From Adineta vaga (taxonomy: Eukaryota; Animalia; Rotifera): a stretch of 64,000 nt of DNA. Positions 39,905 through 58,400 of the stretch are shown here, in pieces. The notes beneath the pieces were generated by a model. It saw only the letters and a program-made list of their open reading frames with translations. It was not told the origin of the DNA and did no database searches. How positions within the stretch are numbered: position 1 is the stretch's first letter; each line of letters begins with the position of its first letter. The stretch spans positions 12,896,001-12,960,000 of the forward strand of contig CP075494.1 of NCBI GenBank assembly GCA_021613535.1, read 5' to 3'. A program made the position numbers and the translations under genes.

Positions 39905-40948
39905 ATGGAAATATCCGATGAGTTGTATTATGTGAATATTCTTGCTAATATCCTTACCAATTTGTACAAATTTGTACAGCCGATATGTTTCATTCTTGGC
40001 AATATCGGAAATCTACTCACTGCATTCGTCTTTTGGAGAAAAACTTGGCGAAAGAATGTATGCGTACTCTATTTCAAGGTTTATCTTATTTCAAATACAT
40101 GTTACATCAACAGTTCTCTATTAGGATCGACTTTTATATATGGTTATAATATTCACTTGCAAAATACGAATATCGTCCTATGTAAAGCTTTCTATTATTC
40201 AGCTTTTCTCTTTGCAATTCATCCACCAACTATTCTAATTCTTGCATCCATCGATCGTCTGCTCATCTCGTCGCAAAACGTTGACACTCGATTGTATAGT
40301 TCCAAACGTCTCGCATATTTTTCTATCGGTTTAAGTACTTTCTTCTGGATTGTCTTCAATGTTCACATTTTAATCATGGTTCATATACAAGAACTATATC
40401 CTTCAGTTTTCGTCTGCTATTATGATTTGTCGAGTTCATATCAAAACTTCGTGTACTATTATTTAGCTATTGTGAACATTTGTTTTTGTTTCATCATGAT
40501 CGTTTTATGTTTGTTGTCATTCAAGAATATTCGACATATCCAGGTGGTTCCACGTCAACAACGAAATCAAAGACGAACAATGACAAAGAAAGATTTTCAA
40601 TTACTTCGCTGTTTGTTTGCACATGGTATAGTTTATATCATATTTCGTATTGGAATTAATCTTTATTATGGCTATGATGCAATAACAAGAGGTCAACAAC
40701 GTTCTGAACTACGTCGAATAATAGAAGTTTTAATCAACGATTTCCTCACTTTCCTGTTTAATGCATCATACTGTCTAAGTTTTTTCATCTATATTAGTAT
40801 TTCGAAAACGTTTCGTCACGAACTGAAACGAATATTGTGGAAAGTATGTGGAAAAGATGTGATGCCAATACGAGAGGAAGAAAATCGGCAGGAGAATCCT
40901 GATAACCAAGCTGGTGTTGTTACGATTCATATATCTGCTTCAAAATGA
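39905..40948 (+). CDS. Orphan rhodopsin-like (class A) 7TM receptor, copy 1, intronless
   Basis: Seven hydrophobic segments; TM1 GNIGN; ECL1-TM3 Cys (LCK); LASIDR; TM7 SFFIY followed by S..FR.EL helix 8. Confidence 0.88.
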   Translation: MEISDELYYVNILANILTNLYKFVQPICFILGNIGNLLTAFVFWRKTWRKNVCVLYFKVYLISNTCYINSSLLGSTFIYGYNIHLQNTNIVLCKAFYYSAFLFAIHPPTILILASIDRLLISSQNVDTRLYSSKRLAYFSIGLSTFFWIVFNVHILIMVHIQELYPSVFVCYYDLSSSYQNFVYYYLAIVNICFCFIMIVLCLLSFKNIRHIQVVPRQQRNQRRTMTKKDFQLLRCLFAHGIVYIIFRIGINLYYGYDAITRGQQRSELRRIIEVLINDFLTFLFNASYCLSFFIYISISKTFRHELKRILWKVCGKDVMPIREEENRQENPDNQAGVVTIHISASK

Positions 40949-41403: not shown

Positions 41404-41967
41404 ATGATATCCATCAGTGTAGTCGCATCCGAAGAGGATGTGCTTACCATAAAAGCTTTACAACACGATAATCTTCGACGGAATATATCTATTGAAAAGC
41501 AAAACGCGGATGGTTTCGTTACAAATGAATATGATGTTAAATTTCTACGAAAAATAAATCAAATATCACCAAGTATCATTGCAAAAGATTCAACATCGAA
41601 ATTAGTTAGTTATTCATTGACAGTATTACCTGAAAATGCATCTGAAGTACCAGAACTTGATAAACTTATTTCGTTGATCAATAAAACGGAATACAAAGGT
41701 AAATCTCTACAAAATTATAAGTACTATATTATGGGTCAAATATGTATTGCCGAAGGTTTTCGAGGTCAACAAATTTTTGATCGAATGTATGACAAACATC
41801 GTGAATTATATGGGAACTCCTATGAATTACTTATTACAGATATTGCAGACAAGAATGTTCGTTCATTTCGTGCTCATGCTCGAATAGGATTTGAACTACT
41901 ACATAGATATATGGATGACATTACGAATGAAATGTGGAATATTGTAGTGTGGGATTGGCACAAATGA
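41404..41967 (+). CDS. GNAT-family acetyltransferase of bacterial type, intronless (HGT candidate)
   Basis: Motif A GQICIAEGFRGQ; motif B N.RSFRAH.RIGF; GFVT and VVWDW motifs recall Bacteroidota GNATs. Confidence 0.85.
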   Translation: MISISVVASEEDVLTIKALQHDNLRRNISIEKQNADGFVTNEYDVKFLRKINQISPSIIAKDSTSKLVSYSLTVLPENASEVPELDKLISLINKTEYKGKSLQNYKYYIMGQICIAEGFRGQQIFDRMYDKHRELYGNSYELLITDIADKNVRSFRAHARIGFELLHRYMDDITNEMWNIVVWDWHK

Positions 41968-43014: not shown

Positions 43015-44058
43015 ATGGATATGTCCGATCAATTATACTATGTGAATATTCTTGCTAATATCCTTACCAATTTGTACAAATTTGTACAGCCGATATGTTT
43101 CATTCTTGGCAATATCGGAAATCTACTCACTGCATTCGTCTTTTGGAGAAAAACTTGGCGAAAGAATGTATGCGTACTCTATTTCAAGGTTTATCTTATT
43201 TCAAATACATGTTACATCAACAGTTCTCTATTAGGATCGACTTTTATATATGGTTATAATATTCACTTGCAAAATACGAATATCGTCCTATGTAAAGCTT
43301 TCTATTATTCAGCTTTTCTCTTTGCAATTCATCCACCAACTATTCTAATTCTTGCATCCATCGATCGTCTGCTCATCTCGTCGCAAAACGTTGACACTCG
43401 ATTGTATAGTTCCAAACGTCTCGCATATTTTTCTATCGGTTTAAGTACTTTCTTCTGGATTGTCTTCAATGTTCACATTTTAATCATGGTTCATATACAA
43501 GAACTATATCCTTCAGTTTTCGTCTGCTATTATGATTTGTCGAGTTCATATCAAAACTTCGTGTACTATTATTTAGCTATTGTGAACATTTGTTTTTGTT
43601 TCATCATGATCGTTTTATGTTTGTTGTCATTCAAGAATATTCGACATATCCAGGTGGTTCCACGTCAACAACGAAATCAAAGACGAACAATGACAAAGAA
43701 AGATTTTCAATTACTTCGCTGTTTGTTTGCACATGGTATAGTTTATATCATATTTCGTATTGGAATTAATCTTTATTATGGCTATGATGCAATAACAAGA
43801 GGTCAACAACGTTCTGAACTACGTCGAATAATAGAAGTTTTAATCAACGATTTCCTCACTTTCCTGTTTAATGCATCATACTGTCTAAGTTTTTTCATCT
43901 ATATTAGTATTTCGAAAACGTTTCGTCATGAACTGAAACGAATATTGTGGAAAGTATGTGGAAAAGATGTGATGCCAATGCGAGAAGAAGAAAATCGACA
44001 AGACAATCTTGCTGTAAATGCAGGTAGCGTTGTAAATTATATTGTACCATCATCTTAA
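43015..44058 (+). CDS. Orphan rhodopsin-like 7TM receptor, copy 2, intronless
   Basis: Same 347-aa length as copy 1; identical core, different N- and C-termini. Confidence 0.88.
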   Translation: MDMSDQLYYVNILANILTNLYKFVQPICFILGNIGNLLTAFVFWRKTWRKNVCVLYFKVYLISNTCYINSSLLGSTFIYGYNIHLQNTNIVLCKAFYYSAFLFAIHPPTILILASIDRLLISSQNVDTRLYSSKRLAYFSIGLSTFFWIVFNVHILIMVHIQELYPSVFVCYYDLSSSYQNFVYYYLAIVNICFCFIMIVLCLLSFKNIRHIQVVPRQQRNQRRTMTKKDFQLLRCLFAHGIVYIIFRIGINLYYGYDAITRGQQRSELRRIIEVLINDFLTFLFNASYCLSFFIYISISKTFRHELKRILWKVCGKDVMPMREEENRQDNLAVNAGSVVNYIVPSS

Positions 44059-44696: not shown

Positions 44697-47600
44697 CTAA
44701 TATCCAGATTTTGGTATGATAGATACTGTATAATCTCGTACTTCACCATAACCACCACTATAGCATGGTTTACGATTTCTTTCATCTTGTACAAGAACAA
44801 TACGCAAGCGATGTTGTTCGCTTGATTGACTTCTTTCATTAAGTTTTGGAACAGCAATACTTAAATCATATTGAGTTGTTGATTGTCCATTTTCATACCA
44901 ATTCTTTGGAAGTATTCGTTCTTTATTTTCATCAAATGTACCATCGTTATTTAAATCAATCCATATACCTAAATATTGTGGATGACTGCAATATGTTGCA
45001 CTATTTGCTGAATGTTGATCATATGAATTTCTATCATCACTCCATTGTTGTGTACAATGTAACTGAATACGTAGTGAATAAACAGCATTATCAATTAATG
45101 TTGCCGTTAGACTACTGCGATCATGGTAGTTATTTACCGAGTTACATTGTTTCAAATCATCTCGAATCTCTGTACCTTGTTCTCCATATAAATGTACGAA
45201 ACCAATCGTATTATGACCATTCGAACAAATGAGATTACCAGGTTGACAATATGTAGTTTTGTAGCCTAAAAAGGATAAAATGCACATTAATACTTAAGTT
45301 TGAAATGAAGCGCATTCGAAGACAAACATACCTATTAAAGTATCACTTCTTGGAGCAGGATACTGATATTGCAATTCTAAATAAAACAGGTAATATTATA
45401 CTTTATTTCATGACTTGTGTTTATTACAGGAGAGCATGGAGAAAACTACATTTTCATTGAGTACTAAAAAACATAATATTACCTCGATGTCCTATTTTTG
45501 AAATGATCGTTATTGTATATTCTCGTGTTTCACGATAATCTGTTCGGCCACATTTTCTTGTGTATTCATCGCTCGGTGTTACAACAACACGCAAACGATG
45601 TGAACCACTTTTGATAATATTTCCATCGACAGCTGGTATACTTATATCTAAATCATAGATACCCAATGGCATTGAACTAAGTAGTGGCCATCGATGTGGA
45701 ATACGACTTTCTGATTCGTCAAATCGATCATCATTATTAAAATCAATTAGAACATTAACATCATGTGCAACATTGCAATCAGTATCTGGAAAACCTCCTT
45801 TCCAATGTGGAAAACAATCTAATTGAATACGTATACGATATATAGTATTTTCATATACAGAAACAGCTAAATGATGTCGATTTTGATTTTCACGTAATAC
45901 AGCATTCGTTGCAATATTGTCTCGAATATGAGTTCCTTGTTCACCAGCCATAAGTACAAGAGCTATTTTACTATTCTTTTGAGAACATACAGCATCACTT
46001 AATACCAAATGAGGAATGTTCGTATCGACTGCTACTCAAAGAAAAATTGTATGCGTTATAATAATTTTTCATTTTTTTTTACATACCTGGTAGTCGTGAA
46101 TTGGGAACAATTGATACCATGTACTCTCGTGTTTCTTTATAATCATTATTACCACATTTTCTTCGATATTGTTCATTTGTTGATACAACAAGTTGTAGAC
46201 GATGTGGTCCACGTCTAGTTTTCTGTGTATCAAGAATGGGAATGTATAATTGAAGATCATAAACACCTTGTGGTGTATAACTTGTCAATGGCCAATGATA
46301 AGGAGCAGCATTCTCTGAACTATCAAATACACCATCATCGTTCAGATCAATCCAAGCATTCACATCGTAGACAAGACTGCAACTGTAACCATTTGAATTA
46401 CTGATCCATAATCGACTACAATCTAACTGGATACGTAACAAATAGACAGTATCTTCGAACAAGACAATATTATCATGTCGTCGAAATCGATTATCACTGG
46501 TTAGTGAAGTTCTTGTCACTGAATCATCTCGAATTTGAGTTCGATGTTCACCAGCCATTACAACAAGAACAATCTTACCAAGATCAGCCGAACAAACAAT
46601 GTCAGTCAGTGGTATATAAGGAGTTTTCTCATCAGGTGTGGCTAGAATACATTCAGAAAAGTTATATAGTTACATGATATAGAGATATACATATACGTAC
46701 GTAGATATCCTCCTCTTGAAATAACATTAACAGTATATTCTCGTGTTTCATTATAATCATTACGACCACAAGTTCTTCGATATGAATCAGTGTGTGTAAC
46801 AACAATACGCATTCGATGTTGTCCAGTTCTTAGACGTCTTTCATCGACTAAAGGTACAGCAATTTGTAAATCGTAGATTCCTTGTGCCATATAACTTGTT
46901 ACTGGCCAACGATAAGGTGCTCCAATTTCTGTTTGATCAAATCGTCCATCGTCGTTCACATCAAACCATAGATTTACATCTTGAGCAAGATTACAACCAT
47001 TTTCAAATAGTTCAGTATTCAATTGCCATGCACAATCCAATTGAATACGTATAAGATAGACAGTGTTTTCATAGAGTGTCACTGCTAAGTGATGTCGATT
47101 ATAATAATCATGTAATAACGTATTCGTTGGTAGATCATCTCGAATCTCTGTTCCTCGTTCTCCGGCCATTAAAACAAGTGAAATTTGAGCAGTATTCTGA
47201 GAACAAATTGGATCTTGATAAATAACATTTGCAGGTGGTGCATGAATGACACCTAAAGGGATGAATAGATTGGCTCAAATGTATGTTCACTTTCTATAAG
47301 AAATCAGTTTAAAAACGAGATTTACCTGTATATGTTGCTTTTGGAACAAGATTTACCGTATACTCTCGCTTGCTTTGAAAGTTACCTGCACCACAAGTAC
47401 TAAGATATGCGTCAGTTGGAATCACACCAATACTCATACGATGAGTTCCACTTCTTATTGTTCTACCATCGATCGTAGGTATACGTATATCCACATTATA
47501 TGAATTGCCAGATATATAATTAGTTGGTCTTGTTCTAGGAGAAACTAAATTCTCCGTATCATAAGAATTATCATCATCGAAATCAATCCACACATTGATA

Positions 47601-48929
47601 TTTTGAGAAAGATCACAATTATTTTCCGAAGGATATCTGTTTCGTGCTTGACCACAATCAAATTCAAGATGCAATCGATACGTTGTACCTTCATATAATG
47701 TAACTGCTGGATATTGTCGATCTTGATAATCTGATGCATATCCACCTGTTCGTAGATCATCTTGAATATTTGATCCATGTTCACCAGTCATTTGAACAAG
47801 AAGAATTTTGCCAAGACTTTGAGTACACATCGAATTCTTCAAAAGAAGATGTGATTTATCAAGTTCTATTTAATTCACATACAAATTAAACAGAATACTA
47901 TTTATTGCCATTGGAAGTTCTTAAAAACTTACCATATCCTCCAAAGTTTGTTGCTATTGGAGCTGGTGTTGAATATTGTTTTACTTTTCTTGCTCGTTTC
48001 AATGCTACTGTTTCTTGTTCTTAAGATATTTGAATCGAATTAGTATGAAATGTTGCTTTCATTCTTACCTTTTTTCTCTATAAGACCACATATTTTCATA
48101 CGAATATCAATCGAACGGTTATCATTGAGCTGAATGTTAACAGGAATAGCTGCTAGTTGCTTGAACATATTCTGTAATTCTTCTACCGATTGAACTTTGC
48201 AATTTTGTGATGTGCATTGATCAGAATAGAAGACAACAAAATTCATTTGAAGAACATTTCCAGATAATGGATTTTCACATGTCATACTTTAATAAATTTG
48301 AATTAGAAATGAAAGAATAAGATAAGAAGATATTTACTGATGATCTCGTTTTGATATTATATGATTTCGAAAAAAAGCATCGGTAATACGAATCTTTCGA
48401 CCATTGAGTTTTGTATTCAACTATAACAAAAAAAATAAGATATGAAAAACAAATCAGTTAAAAAGTGAATATCTTACTTGATTGGTTATATCATCTAAGT
48501 TATTTATTTTCACGAGCAGATTTTCATTTTCCGATAGATACGTTGTACTGAACATAGCTTTCAAAACAACTTTTTGCATGTCTAAAACTGCATCGAATGA
48601 TAGTAAGAAGAAGAAAGTCAGAAACTCACCATCTTCCTTTAAAGCTGCTGTAACTGATTTCTGATGATTTGGTATTGTCTTCCAAATAGTTACAGCACCC
48701 AAGAGTGAAAAAAATGCAATCATGACAAAACCAATACCCAAACGAAGCATATTACAACTTCGTGGATTCCTATTCCAATTGATAGAATATTCATTACGAA
48801 AAATCAATTCTCTTTTTAATGTTAAAAGAATACTTACGATTGTTTTGATGTTTGTTTTCTATTCAAAGTAGTGCACGTCGTATAACCATCATTACTGAGC
48901 ACCATCATTTCGGATTCTGTCATATCCAT
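44697..48929 (-). CDS. Type II membrane protein (~1,200 aa) with five GEVED-like beta-sandwich repeats, ~11 exons
   Basis: Single N-proximal TM (LGIGFVMIAFFSLLGAVTIW). Each repeat has WID.N.DG.FD..E, Y.L.I.VP, G.HR.R.V and ETREYTV/GEVRDYTV. Repeat exons: 47865-47326, 47252-46701, 46641-46087, 46031-45483, 45265-44697; all junctions phase 1. Confidence 0.85.
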
Positions 48930-52436: not shown

Positions 52437-55400
52437 CTAGATATGTCGTTTCTTTTTCTTTCTACGAGATTCATCATCACTACGAATTGTCACTGGTGCA
52501 TAAGCATGATGTGGACCAACTTGACCTGGAACATCCACTTGACATTGCAAGTAAAGTTGTTCAGTTTCAGAATTTCCATTTGGTTCTAATATAACAGTAT
52601 CACCGTCTTGCTATGAAAATTAAGAAAAAAAAACAAAAAAAATAAGTAAGATATGATCACAAAATCAAATTATCAATACATACACGAGCATAATCTGGAA
52701 GACTTGTATCATGTCCATATCGACTCCATACTATTTTATATTGTTGTGCATTTTTAACATGACAGGTGATACGTGCTGTTTCACCTCGACCAAGAGTTAC
52801 TTCTGTTGGTTCTACACTAACTTCAACAGCTTCCATACGTTGTTGAGATCCTCTTCCCTGTTCGTCATTGTGATGATTCTGCTCGTGGCCTTCATTTGTG
52901 TTGGTACCTCCAATTTGAAGGTCATAACTGCTGTCTTGTGCTTGCATTGATGGTACACGTGGAAAAGTTACTTCACATCTAAAAGAGCGGAAGAAAAAAA
53001 CATTCAACAGAATTGCTGGACGCATGAATATTACCTGTAACGTCCAGCATCATTCACTTGAGCGTTACGAATAATGATTGAACCATCCGGATGTACTTCT
53101 ACATCTATAAAACCATAAAAGAATTAATACATGTAAAAAATGAACAATCATATTATATTACTATTTTCTAATGGTCGACCATCTTTTGTATATGCATATT
53201 CATATGGACGTTCGATATTTCCATGAACAGCACATTGTAAATAAATATCTTGTCCTAGATGGTGATTTTGTTCGTCACGTGGTTGAAAGCGAATTTCAAT
53301 ATTATCACGACCATTGCCTTGATTTCCATTTCCTATAATATTCATTCAAATTTTATTCAAAATATGTGTAAGTATATTAACTAGATTAGTAGACAAGAAA
53401 TATTTTCTCACAAACAAATGAATGTAAATTAGTTTCTTTAAATTATTATGTTATGTCGTTCATTTGATTTTTCATAAAACATTGATAAACGAATATGTTT
53501 TATACAAACGATTTTAAAAGAATACCCTTTGGCCAAAGCACAAGAAGCATTATAATCGAAAAACAAGCAAAAGCATTCAAAAAACAAGTAGGCAACTGAT
53601 GTTTCGCTCACCATGATTATTTTGTTGATTAGCTAAAACAACATGCATATACAAATATATACATATATGTACGTTCAAAAGAATGTAAGTCTTTCTAATC
53701 AATAAAGAATCACTAGCTCAGAAAGAATTCATTAAGAAAATTCAAAATTCTATTTTTACTACAAATATCTACTTTGATTGGTTTTATATTCTTTTTTTGT
53801 GTTAAAGATAAATATTCTTACATGATTCTCGCCATTGAATATAGACTGCAGATGATACACGTCCTTGATTATTACTGACTTCAAGATGGTATTGTCCAGC
53901 AACATCACTTGAACGACCTTCAATATGTAACATACCATTACTACGTGACGTTGCACCATCAGGTAAAGTTGATGAACCATCTTTTGACCAAGTTACTGTT
54001 GCTCCTCTTCCTCCCTGAATTTAATAAATGAAATTTAGAGAAAGAAGAAATAAGATTTTCGATTTTTGTTTTTATCTTACAGTAATAGTTGGTGTTACAT
54101 CGATAGTTTCACCATGACCGATACTATATTGATCTTGTGGAAAACGAATGATTGGTGGACCTTGGACGCGTACACGACGTCTTGGTTCAACTTTAATTTG
54201 TATTTCTTGTGCGTCTTCACTATGTGTATTACGTGCACTGACTCGATAGGTACCAGTGGCATCAAGAGTAGCTTTATTAAGAATTAAACGATTTGGTTCA
54301 ATAGTAAAGTAAGATGGCATTGGTTGATATCCATCAGGAGTTACTCTATTCCAGACAACATTCACTGCCTCATGAGACTAAATGGTTTGAAAATAGAAGA
54401 GAATATCAATATTTATAGTTCTTTATATGATCAATTTCAACGTACAGAAAGAACATATTGAACAGTTAAACGTTGACCTTCTTTTAATTGTATAAAGTCT
54501 GGTTTAATTGTCAGTTTCAATGCAGCTCCTATAGACAACAAAGCAAAAGATATTATGTATATGTAATTTTCATTCGAAAGCTATCAACAAACCTGCATGA
54601 TAATCCAAATGAATAACAATCGTTTCAATACTACCATCGGAATGAGTGATTGTGCTAACATAATTTCCAGCTTGATCAGCAGATGGATTTCGAAAGACAA
54701 GATCGCTGTCGATTTGAATGACAGTCGCTGGTAAGGCACTACCATCGGGACGGCGCCATATAACTGTTCGTGGTTGAGCATTCTAAGAAAAATCAACAAT
54801 AAAACTATAGTGTGAGCAAGAATTGAAATAGATTGATTACGAACAAGAATCTCAAGACGAACACGTTGTTCTGGTTGACCACCGCTTAAAGTAATAGGAA
54901 ATGGTTTCGAATCTCGTGCATCGTACGATTTTTTATTGATCAGGTATGAAGCACGAACACTACTTCCAGGTGTAGGAACTAAAAAATTAATTTATTCATA
55001 TTAATTTTCATAAATAAAAAGTATTCTCACCTGGTGCAGATCCATCTTTCGGTACACATTGGTTACTTCGTTCGTTGAGCATATATCCTGATCTACATCG
55101 TTCACAATGATCACCTTCACTGTTACCTTGACAATTCTTTAATCAACAAAAATAAATAAAAGATTTAATTCGAACTTCAATTCAACTATTTAGAAAACAC
55201 ATACGAAACATTTGCCTGTATCTTGATCACATAGACTGGATCGTTCATTACATAATGTTCGACACGATAAACAATGACCCAAGTAGAAACCAACAAATGC
55301 GTGTACACGGCCATAACCTTCGGCACATTTTTCACATGATGTTCCCGTATAATTCGCTGGACAACGACATGATTCTACGGTAGGTGCATTTTCACTGCGA

Positions 55401-58400
55401 CCATCACGAGTTGCAGTATTGAATACTACAGCATGAAGACTAGAATCAAAAAGATAATTACTCTAATAACCATTAAAATCTTTCTTACACAGCATTTCGA
55501 CGACCACCAATTGGATTTATTTTGATCAGTAATAGTTTCAAATCTGCTAATGCCATAAGAATAATTTCACGAGTAACAGACGCACCATCTTTACGTGTAA
55601 ATGTTCTCTAGAATGACGAAAATCAATATTCAATATCATATTTTTTTATCATTGTTCGAAAAAAAAATGTGTATACCTCATTACATGCAACTGAATAAAT
55701 ATCTCTTTTATTAGCTTTGAATCGTTCTGTTGAAGGAATTTTATGAACCAGATCAATATTGTTACCACGTAACCAAATGAAGTCATCATCACTTGGTGCT
55801 TCTTGATCATTGCCATCATTGGTAAAATGAACATCTATATTACCATCGTATAATGTTACGAAATTACCAAGAATTTCAGATGGTGCTTTCCAATATAGAA
55901 CTTCACGAGTAGATCGACCTAATGAATTTTGATCAAGAGCTAATTCACGTCCGCCATCAAGTTTTTGAATTCTATCACCAGCTTGATATGAATTTGTTTC
56001 GAAATCAATTGGTACAGCATTCCAATTAGAGATTGGAAGAGCAATCTATTGGGAAACAACGAAAGATTTATAAAAGATAGAGCATTCAATTTAGAAAGAA
56101 TATCTACAGCTTGTCGTAACCAATCTGTTGATGTACAATGTGCTGATACACCCGAACAGAAACATGATAAACAGCCATTCGGTGTCACTGGATTGAGATA
56201 GAAATGGCTACGTTTACATTGATTACATCGATCACCTTCAACATTGTATTTACATATACAACGACCACCACGTTCTACTTGTGTACCGGATGCATCACAA
56301 ACTGTTGAGAAAAGATCGTACTATTATTATTTTTTTTGAAAAAATATTAATATACAAACATTGTCCAGAAGCTGTGGCGATCAATTGACAATCACATGCT
56401 GTACCACTCAGAGCATTTCCTTGATATCCTGGAGCACACAATTCGCAATGAAAACCAACAGTATTATGTTTACAATCCTTGGAAGAAACATTATTTTCGT
56501 CGATAGAAATGTTCTTAGATAGATTTTACATACTAGACATCGTCCATTTTCGTCGCAACGATCTGAATGGCCATTACAAAAACATACATATACTTGTGGC
56601 CGTGGAGCTGGAGCCGTTGGTGGTGGTGGTGGTGGTCGTGTAGTTGTTGTTGGTGGCGGTGGTGGTGGAGGTGGAGGTGGTGGTGCACCACATGTTATTG
56701 CCGATGATTGTCCTCTCGCTAATATTATTGAAAACAAAACAAAGCATGACACATATGATATTTTCTTGAAGAATAGAAACTACAAACCGACGATAACACT
56801 GACAATAGCATCCGGAACAGCAAAGGTAAAACCTTGGTTATTAAGTGCTTCGCATGAGTATGCGCCACCATCATTTACATTAACATTACGAACTGTTAAT
56901 ATACCAGTAATGACAAATGGATCGTTTGGATCTGCTGTTTGGATCATAGTACATCGATTATGTTCCGAACAATCAATACAAATATGTCCCCAATTGAGAC
57001 GCCAATTAATATAAGGTGCTGGTGTACCACGAACAGTACATTGAATAGTTAAAGTATTACCAAGATTGACTTCAATTTGACGTTGTGGTGGAGTAAGAAT
57101 TGTTGGTTTAGCTGTAAATAGTTCATATTATTTAGATCAAAAACTAATATCATGAATAACATTCACTTACCACAACCGATTTCATCCGATCGATCAGGAC
57201 AATCATTATAACTATCACATTGAAATGATCTTGGAATACATACGGGACTACCATTTGTACCATTCACACCAGCACATTGATATTCATTTTGTTTACAATA
57301 ACGTTGACGGGGTAGTATTTCTATAGCAGAAAGAAAAATTGAGAAGATTTTTTCTTCATCTTCTTCTTCTTCTTCTTCGACATACCGCAATAATGTTGTG
57401 CTTCATCACTTCCATCATCGCAATCCCTAAAAATCAATCATATTGATTTGAAAAATATCTTATTTTCAAACCAATTTTGTTCCTACCGATCACCATCACA
57501 CGCCCAAAATTTCTGAACACATTTTCTCCCTCTAGTCCGATCAACACAACGAATTTCATTCGGTTGACATGTATCAGCATCTAATAAATTTCCAACAAAG
57601 TCATTTTATATTCATTATTTTCTATATGGAAACATTTCAACTTACGATTACACGATTCATCACTATTATCACCACAATCATTTTTACCATCACATACATA
57701 CGAACGTGGAATACAATTTCCATTTCGACAAGTTGCTTCATCATATTTACAACCAGCACCGATTGCTGGAGAAGTATAAAAAGAAATAACTAAATTTTCA
57801 AGATAATTAGTTTCGAGTTTATTCCTAGTCGATAATTTACCTGGTGTTGACGCTGATCCTGTACAAGAGGAAAAAAAAGTAAAACGATCATTTCAAATCT
57901 TTTCATTCTATATACTTATACCTATGAATGTTAAATCGCTAGTAGCATCTGCGTAACCACTATCGGGAATAGCACAACGATAATTGCCTAGATGCGATTG
58001 TGAAATAGGATTAATATGAAGAGTTCGTCCACGTGAATAGAATGGTTGCTCATCACGAAGAAGCTACAAAACAATAAAATTTATTTATTAAATAATAGAA
58101 AAACAAAAACATACTCGATGATTAAAATACCATTGAATACGATTTTCATCTTCTTGTGCTGCACCTTCACATTGTAATTGAACAGTATCACCTTCAGCCA
58201 TATTTGGTACAATGATACGTAAATGTCTAACATTAACTCGACCTAGAAATAAAATTCGATTTTAGAAGCAATAATTTTATCATTCTATGTCACTAACGAT
58301 CAGGAGCAATCGATCCAGGATAAGTTGTACGTGAGCTTTGACCACCATTACCATCATTATCTTGCATAGTGAGAGTAGCTGAAGCTGAATTTCCAATACT

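Follow-up and report, generated by a model that had tools for sequence, protein, structure and literature searches.

The locus considered here raises the question of how a domain of secreted bacterial proteins came to stand five times, each time in an exon of its own, in a gene of an animal, and what kind of protein that gene encodes. The gene belongs to the bdelloid rotifer Adineta vaga and occupies the minus strand from 48929 to 44697 of a 64,000-nucleotide stretch of contig CP075494.1 (assembly GCA_021613535.1, positions 12,896,001 to 12,960,000), here called the window. From the letters of this stretch and its open reading frames (ORFs), an initial annotation had proposed that a bacterial GEVED domain had become an exon-modular type II membrane protein of the animal. 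On balance, our analysis favors an explanation of this kind, in which the product would be a chimeric type II membrane protein carrying a bacterial domain on a bdelloid membrane anchor.

Gene Structure and Evidence for Splicing

Reconstruction of the spliced frame gave 12 exons and 1,179 codons without an internal stop, interrupted by 11 introns of 42-106 nt that all have GT-AG borders. Database searches were run exon by exon, and comparison of the joined frame with the public A. vaga protein UJR23071.1, deposited as 'hypothetical protein I4U23_026095', showed the two to be identical letter for letter. The predicted protein consists of a 40-residue tail, an uncharged helix of 20 residues, a stalk with its linker (together about 185 residues), and five repeats (R1 to R5). 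Exon 1 (48838-48929) holds the start codon and residues 1-31 of the cytosolic tail, and orthologs start at the matching Met. The repeats are encoded by exon 7 (R1, 47326-47865), exon 8 (R2, 46701-47252), exon 9 (R3, 46087-46641), exon 10 (R4, 45483-46031, with three in-frame acceptors 3 nt apart) and exon 12 (R5, 44697-45265, including the stop codon). The initial annotation was right in giving each repeat an exon of its own, and the exons of R1-R4 are indeed symmetric (phase 1-1), but R5 lies in the terminal exon. A further phase 1-1 exon had been overlooked, namely exon 11 (45332-45376), whose 45 nt encode a 15-residue linker between R4 and R5 that is present in UJR23071.1.

Each of two environmental contigs (3.6 and 3.8 kb) carries one uninterrupted ORF (1,156-1,159 codons) with short flanks, in which the transmembrane (TM) helix, the stalk and the full set of five repeats follow one another in the A. 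vaga order; both look like spliced-transcript sequences of orthologs. Together with the public protein model, these contigs support the proposal that the N-terminal exons are spliced to those of the repeats in a single mRNA. Moreover, phase-1 donors and acceptors occur at the corresponding places of genomic orthologs, even where the introns are kilobases long. The ratio of nonsynonymous to synonymous substitution rates (dN/dS), calculated for each exon against three orthologous loci, ranged from 0.13 to 0.47, and the repeat gene is thus under purifying selection. A candidate intron of the 5' untranslated region, with a GTAAGT donor and a T-rich acceptor, was noticed upstream of the start codon (49098-49003, minus strand).

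Identity and Fold of the Repeats

All five repeats exceeded the gathering score of the Pfam GEVED model (PF20009, 24.4 bits), with 30.2, 40.0, 33.9, 34.1 and 59.9 bits for R1 to R5, which bears out their assignment to this family. In the exons and in the full-length relatives, Pfam recognized GEVED alone, with no NR2 domain, and no C-terminal sorting tail was present. The repeats measure 180-189 residues and share 26-50% identity with one another. The drift of the C-terminal motif described earlier was confirmed, since R5 has GEVRDY, R1 has SKREY and R2-R4 have ETREY, while the count of about four conserved cysteines per repeat holds for R1-R4 but not for R5, which has six. A literal G-E-V-E-D is absent, position 4 of the motif being Arg in 95% of the rotifer repeats; in bacteria this position is mostly Glu, with His in some of the best matches. 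Within the acidic loop WID.N.DG.F, D103 is invariant and N105 and D107 are nearly so across the rotifer and bacterial rows of the alignment.

The AlphaFold2 (AF2) model of R5 is a beta-sandwich, as had been anticipated, with a predicted template modeling score (pTM) of 0.72, and its template modeling scores against bacterial GEVED clusters are 0.58-0.62. Sequence searches of the PDB with R5 and with a profile of the rotifer repeats gave no match. By structure, the best solved match was domain IV of Endo HS-alpha (PDB 9x1i, residues 728-909), with a Z-score of 11.6 and 18% identity over 154 aligned residues; RhoGDI, the Wzt carbohydrate-binding domain and NPC2 ranked below it. A GEVED-type profile also matched domain IV by sequence (E 0.005). 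This domain was published as novel, but seems to represent a GEVED-like domain of solved structure, perhaps the first such structure. Unlike the rotifer repeats, it occurs once, as an accessory domain of a bacterial GH85 enzyme, and its motif is degenerate.

The rotifer repeats share with the GEVED domains of Bacteroidota secreted and type IX secretion system (T9SS) cargo proteins and of streptococcal CshA (PMC10952558) the WID.N.DG.F loop, an R[ML]R strand, the C-terminal G/E..DY strand and the beta-sandwich fold. They differ in standing as a tandem array behind an N-terminal membrane anchor in a gene with introns, without an fn3, PKD, peptidase or NR2 partner or a T9SS tail, in an added pair of cysteines and insertions, and in the Arg at motif position 4, where bacteria have Glu, Gln or His. 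The A. vaga protein therefore holds GEVED-family domains, yet it is neither a CshA-type adhesin nor a T9SS cargo.

Affinity to Bacteroidota

The closest non-rotifer sequences are GEVED domains of Bacteroidota (23-40% identity), found in secreted-type proteins with fn3 domains or T9SS tails, and the homology extends over almost the full repeat, beyond the 78 positions of the Pfam model. An N-terminal L.GE..T signature is common to the rotifer repeats and four Bacteroidota domains, and an unrooted tree separated the rotifers and these four from 22 other bacterial domains with support of 94/93. The phylogeny thus agrees with the bacterial affinity proposed for the repeat, its nearest relatives outside bdelloids being Bacteroidota of one subtype. 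A clade uniting the rotifers with all His-type bacteria found no support, as it appeared in 23% of the bootstraps only. Of the 31 matches listed by the full-length search, 30 were bdelloid or rotifer-like and the remaining one was a T9SS-type protein, and in the Atlas one eukaryotic cluster (Rotifera) lies among otherwise bacterial GEVED clusters.

Several features indicate integration into the animal genome: the contig measures 16.9 Mb, the neighbors are animal-type genes, the gene has a GC content of 0.35 and its introns number 11. Contamination was ruled out on account of the chromosome-scale contig, the introns and the orthologs. Horizontal gene transfer is common in bdelloids and mostly ancient (PMC11258130), and a transfer of the GEVED repeat from a Bacteroidota-like donor is, in our judgment, very probable on the sequence evidence.

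Membrane Anchor and Stalk

Exon 2 (48630-48769, phase 1 at its end) encodes the only transmembrane helix detected by hydropathy, 20 uncharged residues at positions 41-60 of the protein (48741-48682). In 14 family members the corresponding helix comprises 20-33 uncharged residues and its N-terminal flank is net basic, whereas in the five-repeat protein of A. vaga the two flanks carry equal net charge. By prediction, the helix is an N-terminal signal anchor with the N-terminus inside, as in type II transmembrane serine proteases (TTSPs). The short cytosolic tail and single helix of the initial annotation were thus recovered, and the most likely product is a type II membrane protein, held by a signal anchor, whose repeats would lie outside the cell.

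The Cys-containing stalk of about 170 residues was also confirmed, but what had been missed is that it seems to be a folded domain. This domain extends over three exons with intron phases 1-0-2-1 and is followed by a linker exon. According to the AF2 model of the A. steineri homolog (residues 12-152 of the database protein, pTM 0.76), exon 3 (48478-48587, phase 1 in, 0 out) would encode strand 1 and helix 1, exon 4 (48338-48420, phase 0 in, 2 out) strand 2 and the loop between strands 2 and 3, and exon 5 (48069-48286, phase 2 in, 1 out) strand 3, helix 2 and the last strands, together with four conserved cysteines. The resulting order, strand-helix-strand-strand-helix-strands, is ferredoxin-like. 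The top five VIA structural matches of this model are SEA domains of MUC16, Gpr126 and TMPRSS6 (Z 6.0-7.4, root-mean-square deviation 3.4-4.3), and the language-model features of the Atlas also point to SEA. A PDB sequence search with the stalk gave no match. When a profile of exon 5 was searched exhaustively against 1.84 billion proteins, 41 were retrieved, those with names being all from Adineta, and no real match was seen in 61 bacterial genomes. Homology of the stalk to SEA domains, argued from fold and language-model similarity, is probable; the domain is called SEA-like here because the scores are moderate and the Pfam SEA model gave no match.

The architecture resembles that of TTSPs such as TMPRSS6, and of SEA-containing mucins and adhesion GPCRs such as MUC16 and Gpr126, in its short tail, single N-terminal helix, membrane-adjacent ferredoxin-like domain and modular ectodomain on phase-1 exons. 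It differs in lacking protease, CUB and LDLa domains and the GSVVV motif, and in having extra disulfides; the C-terminal trypsin domain of TTSPs is absent, the protein ending with R5. The A. vaga protein is thus built to work like a modular surface protein of the TTSP or mucin type, outside those families.

The linker in exon 6 (47933-48019, phase 1-1) is basic, contains Pro and Thr and includes LKRARK (48002-47985), and the linker is basic in all relatives examined. The other basic site, ISKRD (48357-48343), was placed in the loop before strand 3. In other SEA domains the loop between strands 2 and 3 is cut by furin or by autoproteolysis at a GSVVV-type motif (PMC6954182). The loop site is just dibasic in the A. 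vaga protein, has a canonical furin form in some relatives and is missing in Rotaria socialis.

A Shared Display Unit

A counterpart of exon 5 was found in three GEVED paralogs and at ten non-GEVED loci of A. vaga, most of which show a TM-coding exon upstream. The three GEVED paralogs thus share the helix and stalk, the kind of gene for which a survey had been suggested, but the occurrence of the unit beyond this family had gone unnoticed. The SEA-like exon ends in a phase-1 donor at 10 of the 11 loci examined, and the downstream phase-1 exons encode CAP domains (three genes), Laminin_G_3, FG-GAP, Kelch, EGF or a short Cys-rich domain. The 1-0-2-1 pattern of stalk intron phases seen in the five-repeat gene recurs in one CAP gene. 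The stalk exons appear to be missing from one GEVED locus (L031), which would fit a stalk that is a phase 1-1 unit and can be removed. The tail, signal-anchor helix, SEA-like domain and basic linker may hence be regarded, as far as sequence can tell, as a bdelloid display unit that carries several kinds of C-terminal cargo.

The three CAP loci, at C3:19.05 Mb (L070), C5:0.87 Mb (L093) and C1:17.18 Mb (L094), have TM and SEA-like exons, a Thr/Ser linker and a CAP (PR-1-like) domain; in L070 a run of five Arg lies in the loop between strands 2 and 3. The remaining loci are L097 (C5:6.25 Mb), L098 (C1:16.09 Mb), L100 (C5:16.23 Mb), L099 (C3:7.02 Mb), L096 (C3:14.59 Mb), L092 and L095, a group in which the SEA-like exon precedes Laminin_G_3, FG-GAP, Kelch, EGF repeats or the short Cys-rich domain. 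Two non-GEVED loci have no recognizable cargo, and several cargo exons are long and intron-free. In addition, an environmental bdelloid-like contig (L089:5995-8911) has a SEA-like exon and a Thr-rich exon followed by an intron-free multicopper oxidase exon.

Paralogs and History of the Repeats

The A. vaga genome contains four GEVED genes, namely the five-repeat gene on C5, UJR17248.1 on C1, and UJR08389.1 and I4U23_012290 on C3. All have the TM helix and stalk, and every GEVED exon found in the genome falls within them. The paralogs and the public 'GEVED domain-containing' entries of Adineta and Rotaria agree with the five-repeat gene in the plan of helix, stalk and repeats and in intron phases; the A. 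vaga paralogs differ in having four repeats instead of five, and the C3 genes lack R5. Public databases already label the Adineta and Rotaria relatives as GEVED-containing, while our literature search turned up no work on GEVED or SEA proteins of rotifers, and the supplements of A. vaga expression papers that we examined contained no GEVED entry. The four genes are dispersed copies. An origin of the paralogs as ohnologs was rejected, as the neighboring IP3 receptor gene has its second copy on C2, where no GEVED match lies, and a GEVED match at C1:14.85 Mb was discarded as spurious because it has stops and no flanking exons.

Two paralogs have peculiarities of their own. Ahead of the helix, UJR17248.1 (L017, C1:12.685-12.692 Mb) carries two added cytosolic thioredoxin-type domains as well as a long stretch rich in Ser and Thr. 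The minus-strand paralog of C3 (L019:2330-3000, C3:5.198 Mb) has, in this assembly, an in-frame TGA and a frameshift in the third repeat exon alone; on either side of it the repeat exons are undamaged, and their dN/dS is well below 1.

Since relatives are found in A. steineri, A. ricciae, several Rotaria species and Didymodactylos, the gene predates these lineages, and orthologs across the three genera retain the order of the repeats. The rotifer repeats form one clade (100/99), which supports a single origin of the GEVED repeats in bdelloids; the R5-type repeats are nearest to the bacterial rows and the R1-R4 types constitute a derived clade (100/100). Repeats cluster by position and not by species, with 60-74% identity to their orthologs against 26-50% to neighbors in the same protein, and their order is therefore old and fixed. 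A history in which the terminal exon came first, a symmetric exon second and tandem duplication third is fairly likely from these relationships, and it argues against ongoing exon shuffling. The proposal of multiplication through phase-1 exons agrees well with the derived clade of R1-R4 and with phase-1 splice sites retained at six other loci. By contrast, isoforms differing in repeat number, also envisaged at first, find no support, since neither transcript-like contig lacks a repeat and the order is fixed. Extra R5-type copies are restricted to Rotaria; the tandem, nearly identical copies in R. sordida and R. sp. Silwood1 indicate a recent lineage-specific expansion. A relative on ENA/JGI contigs (P0132 cluster) encodes a portion of the stalk together with two repeats in a single open frame of 528 codons with few or no frame-breaking introns.

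Proposed Explanation and Alternatives

The explanation that we favor would begin with a single GEVED domain of a secreted Bacteroidota protein entering the genome before the split of Adineta, Rotaria and Didymodactylos and settling as a terminal exon of R5 type behind a TM and SEA-like unit that ended in a phase-1 intron. A copy of this exon would then have gained a phase-1 donor and given rise by tandem duplication to R1-R4, after which the order became fixed. The repeats would also have acquired a new pair of cysteines and retained the DxNxDG loop. The outcome would be a rigid row of beta-sandwiches, probably stabilized by Ca2+ and disulfides, displayed at an epithelial or cuticular surface. 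Such a row might bind glycans or glycoproteins multivalently, in adhesion to substrate, food or microbes. We tentatively prefer this role to that of a passive scaffold, at somewhat less than even confidence, because there is no enzyme at the tip and each repeat shows position-specific conservation. Cleavage in the basic linker may release the ectodomain, a step that we consider plausible but less likely than not. A more general scheme, in which the TM and SEA-like 'socket' repeatedly captures native and foreign extracellular domains and turns them into sheddable receptors, with the five-repeat gene as a duplicating bacterial module that senses glycans or microbes multivalently, is speculative and rather unlikely.

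Several points weigh against parts of this explanation. The bacterial sample was gathered through one motif and is biased, and the tree that joins rotifers to one bacterial subtype is unrooted. No non-bdelloid eukaryote was named among the matches listed, a negative that comes from searches not directed by name at other animals or at protists. Regarding the stalk, Foldseek returned nothing significant, all SEA Z-scores are below 8, none of 24 stalk sequences matched Pfam SEA, and the GSVVV motif is absent before strand 3, where the family has G-N-[IV]-L and no autoproteolytic Ser. Both furin-like sites named by the initial annotation exist, but neither ISKRD nor LKRARK is a canonical R-X-K/R-R site in the A. 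vaga protein; with this and the missing loop site of Rotaria socialis, shedding of the furin type finds no support. The joins between SEA-like exon and cargo at the non-GEVED loci were deduced from splice signals alone. To our knowledge, no ligand has been demonstrated for GEVED, a domain that is very common in bacteria. The recognition of N-glycans by domain IV of Endo HS-alpha was proposed from docking and fold similarity alone, and the sugar-binding residues of the closest known carbohydrate-binding module are not conserved in it (PMC12961652), while the paper that defined GEVED left its role open and counted it as a partner or stalk domain (PMC10952558).

This last classification, and the fact that bacterial GEVED mostly accompanies catalytic or adhesive domains, suits a row that has the same origin and topology but is passive, serving as a spacer, a cuticle or mucus scaffold or a self-assembling matrix without a specific ligand. 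The fold is a common Ig-like sandwich, and the residues conserved across rotifer repeats are mostly those of the core, the cysteines and the DxNxDG loop, as a passive role would allow. However, a pure spacer without a catalytic or adhesive domain at its tip would display nothing, the greater identity of each repeat to its orthologs than to its neighbors suggests distinct contacts, and the other cargoes of the TM and SEA-like unit are binding or enzyme domains; we regard a passive row as unlikely, though deserving of consideration. A secreted matrix or glue protein, with the helix acting as a cleaved signal peptide, would fit a helix of just 20 residues followed by small residues and the equal charges of its flanks in the A. 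vaga five-repeat protein, but the helix begins at residue 41, relatives have up to 33 uncharged residues behind a more basic N-flank, and the C1 paralog places about 700 residues, including its thioredoxin-type domains, ahead of it. Secretion of this kind is accordingly very improbable.

The origin of the domain might also have been vertical, or by way of another eukaryote, with its presence in other animals or protists gone unnoticed. The long branch to the rotifer clade, the low identity to bacteria (only 23-40%) and the fact that only some of the matches listed carry names, in searches that were length-limited, leave some room for this. Against it, the named eukaryotic matches are all bdelloid, both in word searches and in the exhaustive stalk search, the only eukaryotic Atlas cluster is that of Rotifera among bacterial ones, and the rotifer branch joins one specific Bacteroidota subtype, so that such a history seems improbable. 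Finally, the exons of R1-R4 could be skipped in frame, Rotaria lineages have extra R5-type copies, and the stop and frameshift of the C3 minus-strand paralog are confined to its third repeat exon, all of which would fit a variable receptor of immune type whose diversity came from skipped or shuffled symmetric exons. The complete set of repeats on both transcript-like contigs, the conservation of their order and number across families, the dN/dS values well below 1 and the presence of just four genes in the genome make that the most improbable of these alternatives.

Most of the foreign genes described in bdelloids are whole enzymes that gained introns later, and EGF and Ig are native modules that were multiplied by exon duplication. 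In the chimeric membrane protein proposed here, a single bacterial extracellular domain was seemingly grafted onto an animal anchor and then multiplied as native EGF and Ig modules are, and intermediate stages are still visible in the terminal R5 and the symmetric R1-R4. The individual parts were already known; what is new is the modeled SEA-like fold of the stalk and the TM and SEA-like unit at ten non-GEVED loci. This unit suggests a route, open to testing, along which domains of foreign origin may reach the animal cell surface, and the rotifer repeats can serve as compact eukaryotic test objects for GEVED function.

Genomic Neighborhood

The neighbors at 1634-38000 and 52460-58000 of the window look like ordinary animal genes and include Atg3-like, chitinase-like, IP3 receptor, aconitase, WASHC2-like, EF-hand and Ig-domain proteins, of which the last two alone were checked with Pfam. 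On the plus strand, two intron-free copies of a rhodopsin-family G protein-coupled receptor gene (39905-40948 and 43015-44058) are 99% identical over most of their length. Between them lies an intron-free ORF of 187 residues (41404-41967) that looks GNAT-like by eye and had no Pfam match.

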